Of a stretch of 35,236 nt of DNA, positions 6,797 to 21,942 are shown piece by piece. The stretch is from Piromyces finnis finn (taxonomy: Eukaryota > Fungi > Neocallimastigomycota), in assembly GCA_002104945.1 (NCBI GenBank), contig MCFH01000124.1:1-35236 (forward strand), read 5' to 3'. Position numbers and translations under genes: made by a program. Position 1 is the first letter of the stretch, and each line of letters starts with the position of its first letter. The notes below the pieces were generated by a model that was given only the letters and a program-made list of their open reading frames with translations, was not told the DNA's origin and did no database searches.

Positions 6797-9546
6797 AATC
6801 ATGACATGAACCAATTAGGCATGCATAATAAAATTGTTTCCTGTAATTTTTTTTAATAGATTTTTATGTTTTATATGATAAGAAGTCGGAATTTCTTATT
6901 GATGAAATATTGTTCTTTTATTTTATATATTTTTAAAACAATTATAAGAACAGCAAAAGTATTGAATTAAAGATACTTTTATTATTATTATTAGTGATTT
7001 CTTTTTTGGTAATTAATAATACAATTCTTTCTATTATTGTTATCCATTCTTTTTTTTATTTTCTTTTTCATTTTTTTTTAATTTAAATATCATTAATTTT
7101 AAAAAATAAACTAATTTGTGTAACATTAGAAATAAATTAACATATTTTCTTTTAATTAAAATTTATTAAAATTAGAAATTATTATATTTAACTTAAAAAA
7201 AAAAGATTTCAAATCCTTTTTAATTAATACAACTTTTTATTATGTATTAAAGTTTATATTTTAATATAATATTCAAATATATTTACAATAAAATAATCTA
7301 GTATTTTATTAAATCGTTTTTATATATTAAATAAATATATAATTTAATCTTAAAAATAAAACAATAATTTATTTAATTAAAAATAATTTTAAACTTTCCC
7401 AATACAGAAATATTTAGTTCAAATATATGACTAAATTCGACAAGAAAGGAAACTAGAAAAAAATAATTATACATTAATAGAACTTTTTAATAAACTTGAA
7501 ATTTTCAAATTTTTATTAAATAAATAAATACTATTTTATTAATAATATATAATAATATGTAAATATTATTTCCTGTTTAATAATGAAATCTAGTATTACA
7601 TTTTGTTTTAAGTAATGATCAAAAATTTTTAATAGTACAAAAACAGAATGCTAATCCATTTGTTAAGAAAAATTATATATACTAATTTTTATTACCTAAA
7701 AGACTTTATATATTTAGAAAATAGTAAAGTTAAACTTGTATTTCAATACTCGTTTGACATTTGCTTTTATTTTCTATTTTTTTATAATAGTCTGACTTTA
7801 TTTTCTTTTTCTTTTACAGAAACAAATAATTTATAAATTATTTAATTTAATAAATAATAAAGTTTAAATATTAGTGGATTATTTTTCATTTTACTATAAA
7901 AAATGAACAACTTTTGAAATTATTGGTTTCATTTTAATTTAATTGTTGGTATTATATTAAATTGATTAATAATTATATAAATTAAATATTTATTTTTTTT
8001 TCAGAAAAAATGTCTTTAAAAAAAATTTTTTTTAAAAGATAAACAAGCATAGAAAATAATATTAAAAAAAAAAAAATAATTGAATACGTATTATGCATTA
8101 TAGAAATAAAAATGAATAATATTACATTTTATACTTCATTATACCTATCTATTTTAAATGAAATGAATTAGTAAATTTATATATGATTTTCAATAAAGAC
8201 TTTTTCAAGTATAATAATTAATTATTCTTGAATAGTATCAAATTTTATTATACTTTTTTTTTATATTATAATAGTTATCAATTGAAAAAAAAAAGTGATA
8301 TTCAACATTTATTAAAAAAATTTTTTTTTAATTTGTTTATCATTTTTAATATGGTTGATCATCAACTATAAAATAATTTATTCATTGTTTTATTCCTACC
8401 TGCCTAAATGAATCCATTCTTTTTATGATTTTTTTATTATAATTAAATAAAATCTTTTAATTAATAATATCACATTTTTATTTATTTAAACTAATAGTTG
8501 CAAATACCTTTTTTTAATTCTTTATTCTAAATAGAAATTAAATAAATAAATAAAACAACTTTAATTAAATATATATCTATTTAATTAAATATTTATTTAT
8601 CTTAAATTTATCTTTTTTTAGTTATTCGTTTGTTATTTTGCATTATTAGGCATTGATTCTTTTAAATTGAATTAAGGATTAAAAATATAATTTTAATATT
8701 AATTTAAATTTCTTTTTGGATTAAAAAATCAAAAGTTATTTTATACAAAATAAAAAAAATAGACCTAAATTCTATGCTTTCTTTTATTTAAATATATCCA
8801 ATATTTTTCATATTTTTAGGTATTTAATGTACTTTTTGTATGAAATATTAAATTTTTATTTATCTATATTAAATAAATTTAATATATTAGTGATATATGG
8901 TAAAATAAAATTATATTATTAAAAAACCATTTAATAAAATTGGCAGTATTATATATTACACCTAAAAATTATAATTGAAACATTATTAATAAAAATAAAT
9001 TAAATCATTTAGATTTTTATAAATGGATCATGGAAAAAAAAAATAATTTAAAAGTATATTATTAAATGTGAACTTATTGTTCATATAAATAAAGTAGTAA
9101 GGACAATAGAGTATAATACAAAGTTAATGTCTTTGCAATATATTATATAATGTACAAATATTATAAAAAACCATATAGAAATCATTTTATTTCTTTATAC
9201 CAATTTAAAAACTGATAAATTGATCATTTAAATAATACTTTTATTTTTATCTTTTTTTGAAACAAGAAAATAATAAAAAAACTTAATCATGGATTTTATA
9301 TTATTTATTTTATTATTTTTTTTTCCTTTTGATGTTTTAATATGATCTTCATATTTTACTTTTTGGCTGATGAAATAATAATAAATCATCAATTGTTTAA
9401 AAATTTAATCTTAATATGATATTTATTTACCAATAAGCCAATTTGTTTTTTTTTTATTTATTTTTTTTTATTAAAATTATTATTTAATTTAATAATTGAA
9501 AACTTTTTTTTTCTTTATATAATTAAACATTAATAATAATATATAA

Positions 9547-9886
<340 letters not shown>

Positions 9887-12800
9887 TTTCCAATATTTAA
9901 ACAATTTAAACTTTTTCAGATATTATAATTACTTCAAGTATGGTTACATTTTAATGTAATATGGAATATATATGGTTATATTAAAATGTAACCAATTTTT
10001 ACTTGAAATATTATATAAATAATATATTATCCTATTATATTTCAATATATTATTAAATCATATTAATTTATAAAACGAATTAAAATTAAATTCATGTTTA
10101 TATTTCTATTAAAGTTAAAAGAAAAAAAAATATTTTTTTTTGCTTTTATAAAAATTTCTTTCTTTCAAATTATTTTAATTAAATTTATTTTGGTTAAATT
10201 CTCCCAAATTTATTATCTTTGATTGTATATTATAACAGATATAATTAATAATCCAAAATAATAAATATTATATTGTTATAATATACAATCTATTATTAAT
10301 TTATTATATAACTTTCACTTTATTTTTTAGCTTGTAAAAAATTATTATTGGTATTCATTTCACAGGTATATAAATGTAGAAGTTATTAAAATTAATTATT
10401 TTTCATACTAAAAAAAAAAAACACTTGATATCATTTAGCATCTTTTTTTTCTTTCTTTTACAAAAAGTATCATATGAATATTTAAAGAATCAACACCATG
10501 GAATACTTATCATTAAGTTCTTTATTATTGCTGTTTTATATATGTACATCTTTTTATTATTTTTTATTATAAAGTCTATTTTTTTTGTATTATAATTTTA
10601 AAACTAGTATTTTTAAGCATTTGTTTAAATAATATTTATTTCTTAACTATGATGATAATTAAATTATAAGTATTATAATTTTTTTTTAAAAGAAAGTAAA
10701 ACAAAAAATAACATTCAATATAAAAGATGAAAGAGTATGGTGTTATATTTTCATTTAACTTTTGATACAAGAAAATTATCTATCAATATAATTTTTAAAT
10801 TTCTTTATTACTTTTAAAATAACTACTTTGTTATTAATAGTATGTAAACATTATTCCTTTTATTTTATTGTATTAAAAATTTGTTTTTAATTTTAATTTA
10901 TTTTTTGTACAAACTAAATTAAATATCTTTTGTATATTCCATATAAATGCATTGAATTTATAGATTAAATTAAAAATTATATAATTTTATAAATAAAAAT
11001 AATTATATGAAAATAATATATTGAAAAATATACTTATTTTATGTAGCAGTCACCTCCTCTTTTCTATTATTCTTTTTAATTTTGAATAAAGTATTGTAAA
11101 TAAATAATATATGATATGTTAAAACATGAAATTAATTATTTATTAATAAATATAATTTATTTTAACATATTTATATTTAACATAATTATATTTATTAATA
11201 AATAATTAATTTCATGTTCTAAGATTTATATCACATAGTTCATAATATAATAAATTATGCTAAGATTTTGTTTGTTGTAATATACTAATTTTTAAACTTT
11301 TTCCTCATACACATATTAACCACATTAACAAGGTAATATCTAACCTTTTTTTTTTTCCTTTTCTTTAAGAATGCGTAAATTAAAACACAATTTCAATTTT
11401 TATATATTCTATTAAATGATGATGTTAAATTCATAAATTGCTCTATTTCTATGATTTAGTATAATGAATTACTTCTAAAGTTATGTATAACAACAATAAT
11501 TATAAATATTGTTATGCCTTTTTTTTTTTTTTTATTTCTATAAAATCTATGTATTAATAGTAGCTAATTTTTGCCACAGTACTATATTCATCTATGGTTT
11601 TTGATAAAAGAATATATATATTATTTATTTTATGATTTAGTTATATCCTTTTAACAATATCTTCACAAACAATTAATAATATTATCTAAAAATACTATTA
11701 TACTTTTATTTGATTAACTTTTTTTTTTATAGGCATTTATCATCTAATAATTTATTTACACTGATCTTTAATCAATTCTATATAACTAATTTTATAAAAT
11801 AATAAATATTCTTTTTCAAACATCATTTAGAAATTAAATATATAGATTCATACATCATTATATTTAACATATAGAACAATCCAACTATTATTAATATTCT
11901 ATATTTAGTTATTGTTTTATACCATAATAACCCTTTTTCTTTTATTCTAGCACCAATACCAATATATTAAAAAATAACATGTAATTTTCTTTATATTAAT
12001 GTCTATCTAGAATTTACTAATGAGTATCATTAAAATACATATTAATTAGTATTTTCATATCTTTGGTTGTACTATAACTATTCATGATTATAAAGTTTTA
12101 TATAATAATAGAGTTTTATTAGGTTTATATTAAATGTATTAAATATATTAATGAAATTTTTATTTCTAATAATTTAATTTATTATATAATGAAGCAATAT
12201 AGGATTACCACTATTTTAGATATTTTACCAATTCATTAACATATATTAACATTATATTCCAACATATAGTGATATTAATTAAATATATCAAAAAGATATT
12301 TATATAAACATATTATATGTTTATATATATTAATAATATTAAATAAATAGATCTTCATTTTATTTAAATGTACTGTAATATATATATAATTTATTAATTA
12401 TTATTTATAATTTACATTATTAATTTTAAAACAAATTTTTTAGACTTAGTTTTTCTTTCATTTAATTTTATTTATTATGAGATTATCCGTATTTTATTAA
12501 TGAAATTAATAATAAATTATAAATACATGTGTAATATATAATAAATATTAATGTAAATATAACAGAATATAATATATATCTGTATCACCATATATTAACA
12601 AATTATAATAAAATTAATCTAAATTTGTGTATATTCTTTTAAAATTATTATTACATATATTATTCTTTATCATTAATAATTAATATAAATATACAGTAAT
12701 ATAGTTTCAATATATAACCAATAAGTAACAAAAAACATTTTGTATATATTAAAATAAATAATAAAATGAAATATTTCAATACAAAAATTTATTTTGATTC

Positions 12801-14652: not shown

Positions 14653-17600
14653 ATGGTATCTCATGTTGAAGCAATATTCGACTTTTATGGTCAAGATGAT
14701 TCCCAACTTTCTTTTAAGAAAGGTGATCATATTCAAGTTATTAGTCGATTGAATTCAGGTTGGTGGGATGGTATATGTAAAGGAAAAAGAGGATGGTTCC
14801 CATCAAATTATGTTGTTGAAACCTATATTGAGGAAAACCAAACCGTTCCATGGATTCCACAGTTAGATGCTCAAGGAAAACAATATTATGTAGATTCCAA
14901 GACTAAAGAAGCTTCTTATTATCCTATAATGAAGAATTTAAATGAAAAAGTAAGCAATAGTGGAATGGAACCTCTTCCAAGAAATTGGGGAATAAAATAT
15001 ACACATGATAGTAAACCATATTACTATAATAAGGAAACTGATGAAACTTGTTGGTCTTTGGATGAAATTAATTTAGAAACAGGGCTTTTAAAGAAACGCA
15101 GTAATTCAAACTCTTTTGGATCAATTAATGAAGAAATAAGTTATTCTACAAGTCCAAAGGCTGGTGAGTTAACTTGGGAAAAAATCTCTAATGATATTTA
15201 TTATTGTCTTCAACAACTTTATAAATCTGCTCGCTTAAATAAAAAGGAATCCTATATTAGTCATTCTGCCTCTATAGTAGAAACCATTCGTACAATGCTA
15301 TATGCCTCAAATACAGCTAAACGTGATTGCCAAATCTTTACTAATAATAAGGCTTTAAAACAACTTTATAGACATATAATGGATTCTTTATCTGAGTTAG
15401 TTGTTACTACAAAGACAGCTTCACAAATTTGGCCACCACCAGATGCTGTATCAAAAATGCAACAGGCTGCCAACAATGTACATCTTAGCGTTAAAAACTT
15501 TATTAAAATGTCTAAAGAATTAAATTTACCATTAGATATTGGACTTGTCGAAGATAGTAATAGTGATGATAAAAATGATGGTGATAGAGCTGATGAAACA
15601 CAACAAAATTCATCAAAGATTATTTCCCAATTAGAAGAATATTCTCGAACTATTAGTGAAAGTACACAAAAACTTAACAAAACAGTTCGTACTCAAGAAA
15701 ATGTTTCTAGCGAGTTAATTATTACTGAAACTAGAAACATTGTAATTGATGTTGGTGATTTCCTTACTGTTATTGATGAAATTAATTATGATATGTTAAA
15801 TAATGAAATTGTTGTTGATTTCAAGACAAATCGTTTAACTGTATGTAATAGAATCTACGGCTTAGTTATGACTACACAAAATATTGTTAATACTTTAAGA
15901 CCAAGTAATTTTGAGGAACAGATTCTTTTAAGTACTGAATTAATTGAAAAGGCTATTAAAGAACTTGTAATTTCCACAAAATGTCTACTTCAAGAAAAAG
16001 AAAATGTTGATCAATATCAAAAAATATATTATGACTATAACCGTAGGGCGTCTGCTTCATCTGAAGCATCTCTTGTAAATTCTTCTGCTTCTTCAAACGA
16101 TACAAATAACTTTTCTTCTCCTGCCAGTGTTAATGTTGCTTCAATAAATAATAATACATCAATAAATAATACTGCTTCGTTAACACGTAATCGTAGAGCT
16201 ATGTCAATGGACGTTCCAGATACTGAATACCCAGATTTTGAAGAAAATGGTCAAGCTAGAAATAGAACCTTTTCTCAACGATCATTACCAAGTAAACTTA
16301 CCGAGAATTTTAACAATATGTACATTACTAATCCACATCCACGTAAGAGTTCTTCTCATTCTGTCTCACCAATACAACCACCACCATTATATTATGATCA
16401 AAATGGTGTTCAAGTTGAAATTGATCAGTTTAGTGAACGTAAGACTTCAGCTAAATTAATGCAACTTTTAGGTTCAGAGGTAACAAATGCTCCTCCTAAG
16501 AAGAAGTGGTATTTAGAATATGATTATGATGTAAAAGATCTTTTATTTAATATGGATGGAAAGGTTAAAGGTGGAACATTTGAAGCTCTTGTTGAACGAT
16601 TAACTTGTCATGATTCCTTTGATGCTAATTTTACAAATACTTTCCTTTTAACTTACCGTTCTTTTTGTACTACTATACAATTCATGTCTGAGTTATTAAA
16701 GAGATATTTACTTCCACAACCAGCAGGTCTTACAGATATTAATGAAGTTAATGAATGGCATGAAAAGAAATTAAAACCAATTCGTCTTCGTGTATGTAAT
16801 GTTGTAAAAAGTTGGTTAGAATATGCTATTGAAACTGATGAAGAAGATCAAAAAGCTTTCAATATGGCAAAGGAATTCTTTGATAGACAAATTCAAAGTG
16901 ATCCAACCTTCCTTACTGTATCAAAACTTCTTGATAGATTTGATAAAGGTTTTACTAAGGGAATTGCTCCATCTCCTGGTCGTGAAGCTCCAGTTCCAAT
17001 CATACCGAAATCTTTTCGTCATATACGTTTCAATGAACTTGATCCAACAGAAATAGCTAGACAATTAACATTAATGTGCTCTAAATTGTATAACCAAATT
17101 CAACCAGTAGAATGTCTTAATAAAGCATGGTCACAAAAAATTAATTCACCAGCCGTAAATATTAAGATGATGATTGAAATGTCAAACCAAGTTACTGGAT
17201 GGGTTGCAATTACAATTTTGAAAGAAACTGATTTAAAGAAGCGTGCATCTATAATGAAGCATTTTATATATATTGCTGAAAAATGTTATGCATTAAATAA
17301 CTTTAATACTTTAATGTCTATTTTAGCTGGTTTTAGTTCAGCTCCAATTCATCGTTTAAGAAGAACCTGGGACTTTTTAAGTAATAAAAATATAGCTACT
17401 TTGGACTCATTAAATAAGACTATGGATAGAAACAAAAACTTTTCTACTTATCGTGAACAACTTCACTCAGTAAACCCACCATGTGTTCCATTTTTAGGTG
17501 TTTATCTTACTGATTTAACTTTCATTGATGATGGTAACTCAAATAATCTTAAGAATGCTGATGGTGAGGTTAATGAAAAGTTAATTAACTTTAGTAAGAG

Positions 17601-17814
17601 AAGTAAAACTGCCGATGTAATTCGTGAAATTCAACAATATCAAAATCAAGTTTACTGTTTACAGGATGTTCCAGAATTACAAAATTGGTTAAAGGAATCT
17701 TTAGTAAGAATTGAGGATGAATCTGATATGTATAATATGTCTTTAAGTTTAGAACCAATAGAACGTGAAGATGAAAAGCTTGCTAGATTGTTAATTGAAT
17801 CTGGTTTTATTTAA
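14653..17814 (+). CDS. CDC25: Ras guanine-nucleotide exchange factor (Cdc25/Ste6-like): SH3, two WW, helical region, REM, CDC25 catalytic domain; 1053 aa, intronless
   Basis: SH3: VEAIFDFYGQDDSQLSFKKGDHIQV...SGWWDGICKGKRGWFPSNYV. WW-like: PWIPQLDAQGKQYYVD and LPRNWGIKYTHDSKPYYYNKETDETCW. REM: VKGGTFEALVERLT..FLLTYRSF..RLRVCNVVKSWLE. CDC25 domain: EIARQLTL, NNFNTLMSILAG, RLRRTW, PPCVPFLGVYLTDLTFIDDGN, INFSKR. Confidence 0.95.
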   Translation: MVSHVEAIFDFYGQDDSQLSFKKGDHIQVISRLNSGWWDGICKGKRGWFPSNYVVETYIEENQTVPWIPQLDAQGKQYYVDSKTKEASYYPIMKNLNEKVSNSGMEPLPRNWGIKYTHDSKPYYYNKETDETCWSLDEINLETGLLKKRSNSNSFGSINEEISYSTSPKAGELTWEKISNDIYYCLQQLYKSARLNKKESYISHSASIVETIRTMLYASNTAKRDCQIFTNNKALKQLYRHIMDSLSELVVTTKTASQIWPPPDAVSKMQQAANNVHLSVKNFIKMSKELNLPLDIGLVEDSNSDDKNDGDRADETQQNSSKIISQLEEYSRTISESTQKLNKTVRTQENVSSELIITETRNIVIDVGDFLTVIDEINYDMLNNEIVVDFKTNRLTVCNRIYGLVMTTQNIVNTLRPSNFEEQILLSTELIEKAIKELVISTKCLLQEKENVDQYQKIYYDYNRRASASSEASLVNSSASSNDTNNFSSPASVNVASINNNTSINNTASLTRNRRAMSMDVPDTEYPDFEENGQARNRTFSQRSLPSKLTENFNNMYITNPHPRKSSSHSVSPIQPPPLYYDQNGVQVEIDQFSERKTSAKLMQLLGSEVTNAPPKKKWYLEYDYDVKDLLFNMDGKVKGGTFEALVERLTCHDSFDANFTNTFLLTYRSFCTTIQFMSELLKRYLLPQPAGLTDINEVNEWHEKKLKPIRLRVCNVVKSWLEYAIETDEEDQKAFNMAKEFFDRQIQSDPTFLTVSKLLDRFDKGFTKGIAPSPGREAPVPIIPKSFRHIRFNELDPTEIARQLTLMCSKLYNQIQPVECLNKAWSQKINSPAVNIKMMIEMSNQVTGWVAITILKETDLKKRASIMKHFIYIAEKCYALNNFNTLMSILAGFSSAPIHRLRRTWDFLSNKNIATLDSLNKTMDRNKNFSTYREQLHSVNPPCVPFLGVYLTDLTFIDDGNSNNLKNADGEVNEKLINFSKRSKTADVIREIQQYQNQVYCLQDVPELQNWLKESLVRIEDESDMYNMSLSLEPIEREDEKLARLLIESGFI

Positions 17815-18848
17815 TCAAAATAAGATATTATCATAATTTAACTCTTCATAAATAATGTTTTTTTTTTTTTTTTTAATAAATTCAATAAATTATTTTAAAA
17901 TCATTACATAGCCATATATACTTTAAAAATGATTTATTGACAAAAGTAAATTTATAAAAACAATGAATTTTATATTTGTATTTTTTAAAAGAAAAAAAAT
18001 TATAATTATTAATTTTTCTATCAGTTAAAAATTACATATAATCATATATAAAAAAGTTATATATTTTAATCATTTATATTAATTTATTTTTTTTTTTGAA
18101 TAATAAAATAAAAATAAAAACAAAAATTAGTAAAAATGATATTAAATCTTTTGGTTTTGTTAATTTGATGAAAGTAATTAAATATATGTAATAAAAATAG
18201 GATACTTGATAATATATTTAATTTAATATAAAATACACAAAGTTCCTTTTCTTTTTTCTAAATAAAAAGAAATTAATAATAAAATCACTAAAAAATCAAT
18301 AACCAAAATTATATTTTCTAATAAAATAAAATAAAAAATTTTATACAACCATTTCCAACTTTAATTTTTAAATTAAATATTTATTTTCATACTTATTGTT
18401 ATCATATTCAGTGTAACTATGACTATAAATTTTTTCTGATTCATTGCAGTGAAACAACTAACACAGCGTTTCTATTCCACTCAAAAAAAATAAAAGTTAT
18501 CATCACCATATGTTAACAATAAATAATATTTTTTTTAAATCTTATTTAAAAAAGAAATTTACCATTAATACAACTAGTATTAATAATTATTTTCTTTTTT
18601 AACAACTTTTTGCTTAATGATTAATTAAAAAAAACTTGGAAAAAAACTATTATTTATATATCATTAAAAAAATTAGTGGCTTTTTATTACCAATAAAATC
18701 TTATGAATATCATTCATTTAAAGATATGATTGGCTAATTACTTAAAAATCTTATTGGATATTCTATATATAAATAGTGCTAATTTTCCATGCCAGAATTT
18801 TTATTTTTATCTTTTAGTAAAACTGAAAAAAAGTATTTATTAATAAAG

Positions 18849-19375
18849 CTTAAATTATATAGTATTTAAGAAATTATTAATAAAGTATCAAGAAGTTTTA
18901 TTAGATTTCTAATATAGATGAGTAGTAACGATGATTAAGGATGTAGGTAGCATTAGATTAGTGTATCCTTATGTATTTTCATACATTTGGTAGGCACTAA
19001 TCACCCAAGGTGATGTATAATACTATCCTTAATATCGAAGATAGAAGTATTATTTTGAAGGATTGGTAGTTATAGTGTATTATAGCTTCTTTTAGCGTAT
19101 CCTTGAGCAGTCTTTACATTTGGATTTTTTTCCATGTTTAGACCGTTCGGAGAAACTGAAAGGTTCCAGGTTATTTTATGCTTATCGATTTTTCAAAGTA
19201 ATTGTTACCATATATTCTATATCTTTTCGGAAAAGTACAAGGTAACGCAGTTATCAGTACTGACTCGTCACTATGTGGCGTTGATCGTTGAGGTAAACCA
19301 TATGGAAAACATCTCATTATTAAAACAACAAATTATAAAATTAATTAATTTAAAAATTTTATATGAAAAATATTT
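18849..19375 (+). repeat. Left arm of 527-bp near-perfect inverted repeat
   Basis: Reverse complement of 20976-21502 with no indels (paired coordinates sum to 40351). One mismatch seen (18896 vs 21455). Weaker similarity extends to ~18834/21518 outward and a few tens of bp inward. Confidence 0.97.
18915..19314 (+). ncRNA. snR30: snR30/U17 (SNORA73)-family H/ACA snoRNA, copy 1 (5' end approximate)
   Basis: 3' end reads AAACCAU(19295-19301)-auggaaa-ACA(19309-19311)-UCU, i.e. the m2 motif 7 nt before the ACA box as in yeast snR30 and vertebrate U17. An m1-like AUAUUCUAU (19212-19220) lies opposite it, closed by stems uuaccau/auggaaa and aucuu/gaggu. Candidate H box AAAGUA at 19195-19200. The body is GC-richer than its flanks and has many hairpins (auguau-uuuc-auacau, aucacc-caa-ggugau, aguuauag-ugua-uuauagcu). 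Confidence 0.8.
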
Positions 19376-19458
19376 ATTTTTTTGATATATGTTATTATTT
19401 GTTAATTTTATTAAAATTTTGATTAATTTAAATATAAATTTGTAAAAGCAATTTAGTT

Positions 19459-20430
19459 TTATACTACTTTAGTTAAATTTTGAGTTTTAGTATTTTCAAG
19501 TTTATGATATTCTCCATATTCTCTATCCTTTATATATAATTTTACTTTTCTAACAATGTATCGAGAAATGAAATAGAAAACTAGTGCTGAGGCAATGCTT
19601 AAAGCAAATAATGAAAATAAATTCTGTACCATTCTTTTCATAAATGGAGTATGAATTAATATATATTTCTGATATTCTTCTTGATAAATATTCATCATTA
19701 TATTTTTTGGTTTAAATTTTACAGGTTCTGGCACACCCCATTCGTGCATTGAAACAACCACTTTTATATATATTTATTTTAACAAGGAATATAAAAATAA
19801 TTTATAAATCATAGTATTCATGTTATATTTTTAATTAAAAAATAGGAAATTTAAATTTTATTATATTTATTTATTTTTATTTTATGAGGAAAAAAAAAAA
19901 AAAAAATAATTACCTAAACCTCTTACTACACCATTAAAATCATTTTCAAAATCAAAAACATTGCTTAGAGTCCAGGTAAAAGTTTGTGGAAGAGGTTTAT
20001 CTTTTCCATTAAAATGTTCCAAAGTACTATTAATAGGCGACTTTACACCACATTTTTTTGGTCTAAAATATTGATCGTTAATATTTATAAACTGACCAAT
20101 TCTTAAATTAAGATCCTCCTCTTCCGTAAAATGGGTTTGATTTTCATGTTCAACATAAAGGATAAGACCTTTGATACTTTTATATTTTGAACCAAAAAGT
20201 GTAATGGTAAAATCGGGTGAAAACTTTATATTATTTTTTAATTTTGGTTGAATGGTGAGCATAAATCCACCAGTTGGATCATCAATATTTTCAGAAACAA
20301 AATGATTTCTGGTATTTATGCTATCAAGCTCAGCTGAGCAATAAGGTGATTCGTATGAATGACATTGACCATTATTTATATAAAATATATAAAATAATAA
20401 TATTATTTTATATAGACAACTTTTAATCAT
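19459..20430 (-). CDS. Signal peptide + Reeler-like domain + C-terminal transmembrane helix protein; 2 exons (20430-19914, 19760-19459)
   Basis: Hydrophobic N-terminus MIKSCLYKIILLFYIFYINNGQC. Reeler-like motifs include PYC, FTITLFGSKYKSIKGLILYVE, RIGQF, KKC, STLEHFNGKDK and FTWT, with GL|VVVSMHEWG joined across a phase-1 GT-AG intron. TM segment LFSLFALSIASALVFYFI, followed by a basic stop-transfer stretch. Confidence 0.7.
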
Positions 20431-20975
20431 TTTTTTTTTTAATTTTTATTTTTATTAAAATATATTATATATACAAAGTTATTTTATACAAGCAACATAA
20501 ATAAATGGATAGTATGAAAAATTTTAAAATTCAAATTTAAAATCAATAAATTAGAAATTTTAAAAAAAAATAAAATAAAAATTATATATTAAAAATTTTC
20601 TTTTATTATTATTTAATTTTTATATATATTATAATCTTTTATCTATTAATTATGTATGATACATGTATTTATAAATAAAAATAATTAATTAAAATAGGTT
20701 TAAATAAATATAAAAGAATAAAAATGGATATATTGTAATTATAATTAAAATAAGGCACTATTATAATATAATAATTGTTCTTTAATGGAGCAAATAAACA
20801 TATACCAAACTTTTCCAGGACAGAATTATAACTCTATCTATTGATTGCACTAATCCTAATGGTCAAAAGTTCCCGTTGATTGTTATAATATGTATCTTTC
20901 GGAATTTCCTTGATTAAATTTGAAACTCTTTCCATATATATATATTTTTTTAATCAGAAAAATTAATAAAAAAAC

Positions 20976-21502
20976 AAATATTTTTCATATAAAATTTTTA
21001 AATTAATTAATTTTATAATTTGTTGTTTTAATAATGAGATGTTTTCCATATGGTTTACCTCAACGATCAACGCCACATAGTGACGAGTCAGTACTGATAA
21101 CTGCGTTACCTTGTACTTTTCCGAAAAGATATAGAATATATGGTAACAATTACTTTGAAAAATCGATAAGCATAAAATAACCTGGAACCTTTCAGTTTCT
21201 CCGAACGGTCTAAACATGGAAAAAAATCCAAATGTAAAGACTGCTCAAGGATACGCTAAAAGAAGCTATAATACACTATAACTACCAATCCTTCAAAATA
21301 ATACTTCTATCTTCGATATTAAGGATAGTATTATACATCACCTTGGGTGATTAGTGCCTACCAAATGTATGAAAATACATAAGGATACACTAATCTAATG
21401 CTACCTACATCCTTAATCATCGTTACTACTCATCTATATTAGAAATCTAATAAACCTTCTTGATACTTTATTAATAATTTCTTAAATACTATATAATTTA
21501 AG
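20976..21502 (-). repeat. Right arm of 527-bp near-perfect inverted repeat
   Basis: Reverse complement of 18849-19375. The ORF track shows the same MFRPFGETERF... translation on opposite strands. Confidence 0.97.
21037..21436 (-). ncRNA. snR30: snR30/U17-family H/ACA snoRNA, copy 2 (5' end approximate)
   Basis: Identical to copy 1 over the predicted RNA: ACA box at 21042-21040, m2 at 21056-21050, m1-like motif at 21139-21131. Confidence 0.8.
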
Positions 21503-21942
21503 TTTTTATTAATAAATAATTAATTTTTAAAATAAAAACATTACCATATATTTAAAAATTTTGAATGTTATTGAGTTTATATACAAAACTTTTTTTGATT
21601 TTTAACCAATCAAATTATTTCATTTTAATGATTCTTAAAATATTATTGGATGTATAACTATTAATATTTATTATTGAGTTTTCTGTATTTTTTTATTTAT
21701 AATAATTAATAATTAATATATAATTTTTATTAGAGAAGAGATAAATTATAAATATAAAATAAAAGTACTAATTAATTAGTATTAATTAGTAGTATTACTA
21801 TTACTTTTATTTTTATAATTTATAATTTTTTTTAATATTATTATTATTGTTAAATATTTATTTAGATATATCAATGACAATATTTTATTTTTTATTATCT
21901 GTTTTACTTTTTATTATAAATAAAATATTTTTATGCATTTCT

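Follow-up and report, generated by a model that had tools for sequence, protein, structure and literature searches.

A probable snR30/U17 small nucleolar RNA encoded by twin convergent genes in the anaerobic gut fungus Piromyces finnis

What is encoded by the GC-enriched, hairpin-rich island at 18927–19314 on the forward strand of contig MCFH01000124.1 of Piromyces finnis (assembly GCA_002104945.1; the whole stretch of 35,236 nucleotides (nt) that was analysed is hereafter the window)? The initial annotation of this DNA had proposed an unannotated small nucleolar RNA (snoRNA) of the snR30/U17 type lying in an inverted repeat, and had dismissed the short open reading frame (ORF) that overlaps it. 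The snR30/U17 RNA is among the few essential snoRNAs and is needed by all eukaryotes for 18S ribosomal RNA (rRNA). Our analysis leads, with good confidence, to the same answer: the island is probably an unannotated snR30/U17 orthologue, present as twin convergent genes together with one diverged paralogue. The GC content of the window is 19%, and that of the 388-nt island is 33.8%, with 16.5% over the preceding 400 nt and 8.3% downstream. Moreover, the segment 18915–19317 folds with a z-score of -6.8 relative to shuffled sequences, and none of 100 shuffles folded equally well.

The 3′-end of the unit consists of AAACCAT (19295–19301), ATGGAAA (19302–19308), ACA (19309–19311) and TCT (19312–19314), and an m1-like ATATTCTAT is located at 19212–19220. 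The description of a structured, GC-enriched island ending in AAACCAU-N7-ACA-UCU, where N7 is a 7-nt spacer, was thus borne out element by element. In animals, fungi and a ciliate, the m1 motif of the family is AUAUUCCU[A/G/U] and the m2 motif is the invariant AAACCAU (PMC7601244, Table 1), and in known members the m1/m2 element lies invariantly 7 nt upstream of ACA (PMC2664660). In the present RNA, m2 is exact and its spacer to ACA (AUGGAAA) has the same length of 7 nt. In the minimum free energy (MFE) fold, the helices P1 (19205–19211 with 19302–19308, 6/7 pairs) and P2 (19220–19225 with 19290–19295, 5/6 pairs) enclose a loop that carries the m1-like element (m1′) on the 5′ strand and m2 on the 3′ strand, and ACA follows directly after P1. 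The two elements therefore face each other across an internal loop, as had been claimed. The last P2 base of the 3′ strand (19294, paired with 19221) is 15 nt upstream of the ACA at 19309, in agreement with the H/ACA rule that the top of the pocket is 14–16 nt from ACA (PMC7601244).

Unconstrained MFE folding of the unit gave three domains, namely a 5′ hairpin, a central hairpin and a 3′ hairpin (Table 1). The first internal loop of the 5′ hairpin is >20 nt from the hinge, and is therefore too distant for a guide pocket; the 5′ hairpin of snR30 likewise has no correctly placed pocket, and is dispensable in yeast (PMC7601244). The hinge at 19038–19048 is single-stranded in the MFE fold, and the H box is more likely to be its AUAGAA at 19041–19046, directly after the 5′ hairpin as in U17. 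This hexamer is the same in the paralogue and in one relative (organism C), and another relative (organism D) has 19043 A>T. The ANANNA box that had been noted just upstream of the m1/m2 region exists as a string (AAAGTA, 19195–19200), but ANANNA strings are trivial in DNA of 80% A+T, and as an H box this one does not stand: because AAAGUA is base-paired in a helix that covaries at 19052:19199, it is probably not the H box. A closing helix of 18929–34 with 19182–87 was also considered and rejected, as changes at 19187 are uncompensated there and covary with 19064.

Covariation in related sequences, which the initial annotation had named as a check, was found on the predicted helices in a paralogue and in relatives. 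The informative comparator is a copy on contig C146, which is 87% identical to the RNA. Its identity starts abruptly at 18927 and stops exactly at the ACA (19311), and both flanks are unalignable. In this paralogue, identity is complete over the initial 105 nt and the final 54 nt of the unit, with m1′, m2, the N7 spacer and ACA unchanged, and all 49 substitutions relative to the copy described above (copy A) fall between 19032 and 19257. On the MFE structure, ten base pairs are changed on both sides and still pair, and four more carry compatible changes on one side. Nine of the ten doubly changed pairs are in the central hairpin; the other is the apical pair 19238:19257 of the 3′ hairpin (C-G to U-A). 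Sliding the partners by 1–3 positions left 0–2 doubly changed pairs, and random placement of the same number of substitutions gave means of 1.2–1.5 and a maximum of 7 in 20,000 trials. Because the doubly changed pairs exceed both controls, both paralogue lineages are under selection for RNA structure. Nine pairs were scored as broken; for three of them, this comes from misalignment at a 2-nt insertion within the apical stem-loop 19241–19255, and this stem re-forms in the paralogue when it is aligned by hand.

At least part of the stretch was found in 20 public runs from 15 studies, including gut, faeces and bovine-gut metatranscriptomes, and several other organisms, known by codes, share 10–20% of the sampled words. 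Four runs were compared over 18600–19600 at 80% likeness. In the run from the same organism (X1), transcriptome-sized contigs cover 18897–19311, depth is zero at 18600–18871 and 19314–19347, and a separate contig represents the C146 paralogue. In a declared RNA-Seq metatranscriptome (X4), 19006–19312 is present with nothing in the flanks. Homology extends over 18927–19311 in organism D (X9), and over 18926–19051 and 19200–19317 in organism C (X5), in which the central 148 nt are replaced by 146 unalignable letters. Compensatory changes in these relatives include 18973:18984 (G-C to A-U in organism D), 19052:19199 (A-U to U-A in organism D and also in the C146 paralogue), 19064:19187 and 19124:19131. 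In addition, 19236:19259 in the apical 3′ hairpin changes from U-A to C-G in organism C, and 18933:19033 in the 5′ hairpin changes from G.U to G-C. Variation of the 5′ hairpin in organisms C and D is otherwise confined to the loop 19006–19009, and a telomerase-template reading of the loop 19003–19010 was set aside, as this loop varies among relatives.

Contigs from RNA libraries stop at 19311/19312, and such contigs show presence and boundaries, not true RNA ends. The mature 3′-end is predicted at 19314, and the RNA is predicted to be ~390–420 nt long. A 5′-end at 18915, as had been proposed, finds no support: the match to the paralogue begins at 18927, contigs from RNA libraries extend as far as 18897, and the 5′-end is possibly as much as 30 nt upstream of the conserved unit (~18897). 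An 11-nt A/T element (AATTATTAATA, 18873–18883), 44–54 nt upstream of the unit, is shared with the otherwise unalignable upstream flank of the paralogue. It is possibly a TATA-like promoter element, and chance identity in AT-rich DNA is the other option.

The other runs give some further observations on gene arrangement. The X4 contig of 337 nt (307 + 30) joins 19312 straight back to 19006, and such a cyclic assembly path means that the organism of that sample has either an RNA that comprises the last 307 nt in circular or permuted form, or units that are truncated and arranged in tandem. In X5 and X9, consecutive units are connected head-to-tail, the 3′-end of one running into the 5′ start of the next (19317 to 18926 with 86 letters between, and 19312 to 18927, respectively). 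In these organisms the gene apparently occurs as tandem direct repeats or in dicistronic transcripts, whereas the copies here are inverted around a gene. Two scans of metagenome contigs, with a 5′ pattern and an m1-side pattern, gave no match.

The uniqueness of this RNA was surveyed over the whole genome (56.46 Mb, 232 contigs). The AAACCAT-N7-ACA pattern alone is at chance level (266 matches vs 228 in the control). The composite of ATATTCYWW, a gap of 25–115 nt and AAACCAT-N7-ACA has 13 matches, seven of which are the copies of this RNA. The remaining six were rejected: five are AT-rich and unstructured without P1/P2 helices (among them those on C90, C167 and C175), and the match on C180 is inside a 339-amino-acid (aa) ORF. 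Pattern and model searches of the genome yielded no alternative snR30 candidate. The best genome-wide match of the SNORA73 model (C154, 21 bits) was not accepted as snR30, as it covers only the 5′ hairpin and H-box part of the model and has no m1/m2. This locus (L008 1501–1650, C154:529731–529880, + strand) is a compact ~150-nt H/ACA candidate (SNORA73 21 bits, SNORA2 15 bits) whose hinge reads AGAUAA and which ends in ACA; probably it is a pseudouridylation guide that has escaped annotation. Matches of permissive scans to ToxI, rliE, Fungi_U3 (14.7 bits), Ysr197 and snoZ242 are weak and were treated as noise.

The 18S rRNA of the same organism was located by a universal primer-site pattern. 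Its rm1 (GGAAUA) and rm2 (UGGUUU) target sites are exactly as in yeast. This match shows compatibility, and is non-discriminating, as the target is conserved across eukaryotes. In the numbering of this 18S (L012), AUGGAAUA occupies 810–817 and UGGUUU 846–851, 36 nt apart in expansion segment 6 (ES6), and the 28 nt between the sites form a 12-bp hairpin of -10.6 kcal/mol. Such a target geometry, with a hairpin between the two sites, precludes modification (PMC2664660, PMC7601244). In the snR30/U17 family, m1 is expected to form at least 6–8 bp with rm1. The UAUUCUAU of m1′ pairs with AUGGAAUA over 8 bp (seven Watson-Crick pairs and one G.U), and AAACCA of m2 pairs with UGGUUU over 6 bp. No extra complementarity between the RNA and the 5′ external transcribed spacer plus 18S was an outlier against shuffles. 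A 13-nt perfect Watson-Crick match of UUUUUCAAAGUAA (19189–19201, 3′ strand of the internal-hairpin base) to ES6 (L012 ~756–768) sits ~50 nt upstream of rm1, and shuffles reach 13 nt in ~2% of trials (p ~0.02). This match has three mismatches in the paralogue, is unkept in organism D and is probably coincidental. Regarding the rRNA genes themselves, 18S starts on contig C153 are at 7580 and 16114, and the 8,534 nt between them are the repeat unit of the rDNA. The universal 5′ primer site of 18S has only two exact matches in the assembly, which indicates that most of the rDNA array is either collapsed or absent.

As in yeast and human, the two terminal hairpins would each be expected to bind a Cbf5-Nop10-Nhp2(-Gar1) set. 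Within the 3′-hairpin loop, the basal part, comprising m1′ AUAUUCUAU and m2 AAACCAU, would pair with rm1/rm2 in ES6 of nascent 18S, and this pairing may dock the particle on the small-subunit processome and allow the early cleavages that produce 18S to proceed. Protein partners, pairing with ES6 in vivo and a function in processing are inferred here from the snR30/U17 family. The orthologue assignment draws on observed motifs, geometry, fold, covariation, conservation boundaries, RNA-library presence and uniqueness in the genome, and the proposal of the initial annotation is supported, among other results, by the exact m2, the N7-ACA end, the three-hairpin layout and the lack of a competing candidate.

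Several results weigh against this assignment. Rfam at gathering thresholds gave no match over the whole window. For the SNORA73 model (RF00045), whose threshold is 74 bits, the score is 14.1 bits, and E is 0.52 although the stretch searched was just 801 nt long; a genome-wide search with the yeast snR30 model (RF01271) gave nothing at E ≤ 10. The suggested search with snR30 and SNORA73/U17 models hence brought no confirmation, although the SNORA73 covariance model aligns precisely m1, P2, m2, P1 and ACA. We therefore assign the RNA to the biological snR30/U17 class, not as a match of RF00045 or RF01271. The m1-like element departs from the AUAUUCCU core, which does not vary among the animal, fungal and ciliate sequences (PMC7601244, Table 1): AUAUUCUAU agrees with AUAUUCCUA at 6/9 positions in register, or at 8/9 with a one-base deletion, and the exact consensus is absent. 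With G.U pairs permitted, a bipartite 18S site of some kind exists for 69% of shuffled motif pairs. The H box is insecurely placed, with its third position altered in one relative. In addition, the relatives are known from difference tables of assembled contigs, among the rows listed, and the snoRNP proteins and the function are predicted from sequence.

These results would suit a lineage-specific structured RNA of other function, such as an orphan H/ACA-like or other nucleolar or nuclear RNA, in which the snR30 motifs occur by coincidence. The low Rfam scores, the non-consensus m1, the chance frequency of AAACCAT-N7-ACA and the statistically weak 18S complementarity are all in line with it, as is a 5′ hairpin conserved beyond what is expected for snR30, in which it is dispensable in yeast. 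However, such a coincidence must cover the exact m2, the 7-nt spacing, the P1/P2-flanked loop at 15 nt, the ACA boundary and three hairpins at the sole locus of this kind, and the essential snR30 would then be absent from the assembly altogether. We consider this explanation improbable.

Less probable again is an ordinary pseudouridylation-guide H/ACA snoRNA whose 3′ pocket modifies rRNA or small nuclear RNA. The hairpin-hinge-hairpin-ACA design and the canonical 14–16 nt between pocket and ACA would fit a guide. However, a length of ~390 nt with a 150-nt internal hairpin is unlike compact guides such as the ~150-nt candidate on C154, and the 5′ hairpin has its first internal loop too far from the hinge. 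Moreover, the strands of the 3′ pocket are those of snR30, and match ES6 by their basal halves with a hairpin between the target sites.

The genomic arrangement of the RNA bears on a third explanation. The inverted repeat is 555 nt long, and the setting that had been described was confirmed: its arms are 98% complementary overall and identical across the full RNA, so that copy B, on the opposite strand, is convergent with copy A. The RNA unit has seven matches in the genome, and six of them are identical, one inverted pair lying on each of contigs C29, C64 and C113. Including flanks, the three loci share 99.2–99.8% identity over 3.4 kb, with one reversed, which points to one twin locus assembled redundantly, to haplotigs, or to a very recent (segmental) duplication. 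Given such identity, the six copies are not counted as independent evidence. Most likely, the gene comprises two identical convergent copies in the window and one diverged, still-constrained paralogue on C146. Seven matches in inverted repeats might also be expected of a repeat or mobile element, or of decaying pseudogene copies without RNA function. However, six matches represent one twin locus assembled three times, the diverged copy keeps its helices via ten compensatory changes with motifs and termini identical, the unit recurs in conserved form in other organisms and is represented in RNA libraries, and it has no terminal repeats or coding capacity; we give this explanation very little credence. 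The weakest explanation, which we think can almost be disregarded, takes the 83-codon open frame on the + strand as a real small protein gene, and the frame is spurious as first supposed: it has no homologue among 5.8 billion clustered proteins, it is broken to a 29-aa remnant in the C146 paralogue, it crosses the end of the conserved unit, with conservation starting 207 nt before its ATG and ending 74 nt before its stop codon, and substitutions within it track RNA pairing, not codons.

Table 1. Positions of the features discussed, in window coordinates
Feature	Position	Strand	Basis
Left arm of inverted repeat (RNA plus ~80 nt on each side)	18845..19399		Self-comparison of window
Right arm of inverted repeat	20952..21506		Self-comparison of window
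Copy A, snR30/U17-like H/ACA RNA, conserved unit of 388 nt	18927..19314	+	Boundaries in paralogue and relatives
Copy B, identical to and convergent with copy A	21037..21424	-	AAACCAT...ACA at 21040-21056, minus strand
A/T element AATTATTAATA, 44-54 nt upstream of unit	18873..18883	+	Common to otherwise unalignable upstream flank of paralogue
5′ hairpin	18929..19037	+	MFE fold; the same in both paralogues, nearly invariant in relatives
Most likely H box AUAGAA, in hinge after 5′ hairpin	19041..19046	+	Fits ANANNA; unpaired in MFE fold
Central (internal) hairpin, ~150 nt, fast-evolving sequence with kept structure and length	19049..19202	+	Paralogue and organism C
ANANNA string AAAGUA of initial annotation	19195..19200	+	Paired in basal helix of central hairpin
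3′ hairpin	19205..19308	+	P1, m1/m2 internal loop, P2, branched distal part
m1-like element AUAUUCUAU (family consensus AUAUUCCUA)	19212..19220	+	Same in paralogue; in organism C over 19200-19228
m2 AAACCAU, exact universal consensus	19295..19301	+	Unpaired between P2 and P1; same in paralogue
ACA box, 7 nt after m2	19309..19311	+	Identity of paralogue ends here
83-aa ORF over RNA and AT-rich 3′ flank	19134..19385	+	ORF listing

The window appears to span all of contig C29, and its other features are mentioned briefly. Between the convergent copies, two ORFs of 100 and 182 aa on the minus strand (19459–20430) probably belong as exons to a single gene whose start resembles a signal peptide, and contigs from the same organism cover 19447–19600, so that this gene between the RNA copies is probably expressed. 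Just upstream of the snoRNA locus, an uninterrupted ORF of 1,053 aa (14653–17814, + strand), in a block of 27–34% GC, resembles, by eye only, an SH3-plus-RasGEF signalling protein. A long trinucleotide microsatellite at 9534–9900, in DNA with a GC content of 6%, begins with (TAC)n and continues as (TAA)n for ~250 nt.

If the island is the snR30/U17 orthologue, its m1 variant raises a further point. The UAUUCUAU of m1′ can also form an unbroken set of Watson-Crick pairs with 18S AUAGAAUA, located 8 nt downstream from canonical rm1; since it matches both AUGGAAUA and AUAGAAUA, two pairing registers are possible. We regard it as rather unlikely, on present sequence data, that the m1 variant alters docking of snR30 on ES6 in anaerobic gut fungi via the AUAGAAUA register. 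Were it so, this register would invade the 5′ strand of the stem-loop bridging rm1 and rm2, and a different transient ES6 fold would arise during 18S maturation. Moreover, it would be the first natural m1 change without co-variation of rm1, contrary to the stated rule of compensatory rRNA changes.

Very probably, we are dealing with an expected housekeeping RNA with a slightly unusual guide motif, newly found in a lineage without prior description: the literature searched contained no description of snoRNAs of Neocallimastigomycota, and a fungal snoRNAome survey does not include this phylum. Its annotation removes a spurious protein model and gives a marker RNA of the nucleolar machinery for fibre-degrading fungi that are important in biotechnology. 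In addition, a deep-branching fungal sequence that is missed by Rfam models should help to rebuild a broader snR30/U17 model. The non-consensus m1 facing an unchanged 18S target also offers a small natural experiment on drift of the m1-rm1 helix.

The nearest known systems are U17/SNORA73, yeast snR30 and Trypanosoma brucei snR30. As in U17/SNORA73 (RF00045; vertebrates, and S. pombe U17 of 325 nt), the likely H box comes directly after the 5′ domain, an internal hairpin stands before the 3′ hairpin, m2 is exact, m1 and m2 lie on opposite strands of the loop 7 nt before ACA, and P1 and P2 are in the same register; the size is also close to that of S. pombe U17 (PMC7601244, Table 1). In contrast to U17/SNORA73, m1 reads AUAUUCUAU and not AUAUUCCUA, a difference of one missing C or of three substitutions, the internal hairpin, small in human, measures ~150 nt, the distal 3′ hairpin is branched, and the gene stands alone in multiple copies and is not intronic. 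Yeast snR30 (606 nt, RF01271) likewise has 5′, internal and 3′ hairpins, a 5′ hairpin without a properly placed pseudouridylation pocket, and rm1 GGAAUA and rm2 UGGUUU targets identical to those in the 18S of this organism. However, the present RNA is much shorter and has no detectable similarity to the Saccharomycetes model, its 5′ hairpin, dispensable in yeast, is its most conserved part, and it shows no significant extra complementarity to pre-rRNA, whereas yeast has C2/C3 contacts. In T. brucei snR30, m1 is altered and still pairs with 18S (PMC2664660), a precedent for an invariant m2 combined with a non-consensus m1 that pairs over an extended helix (PMC2664660). There rm1 co-varied with m1, whereas in P. 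finnis rm1 is unchanged, and pairing is kept by one G.U and two added A-U pairs, or by the register shifted by 8 nt.

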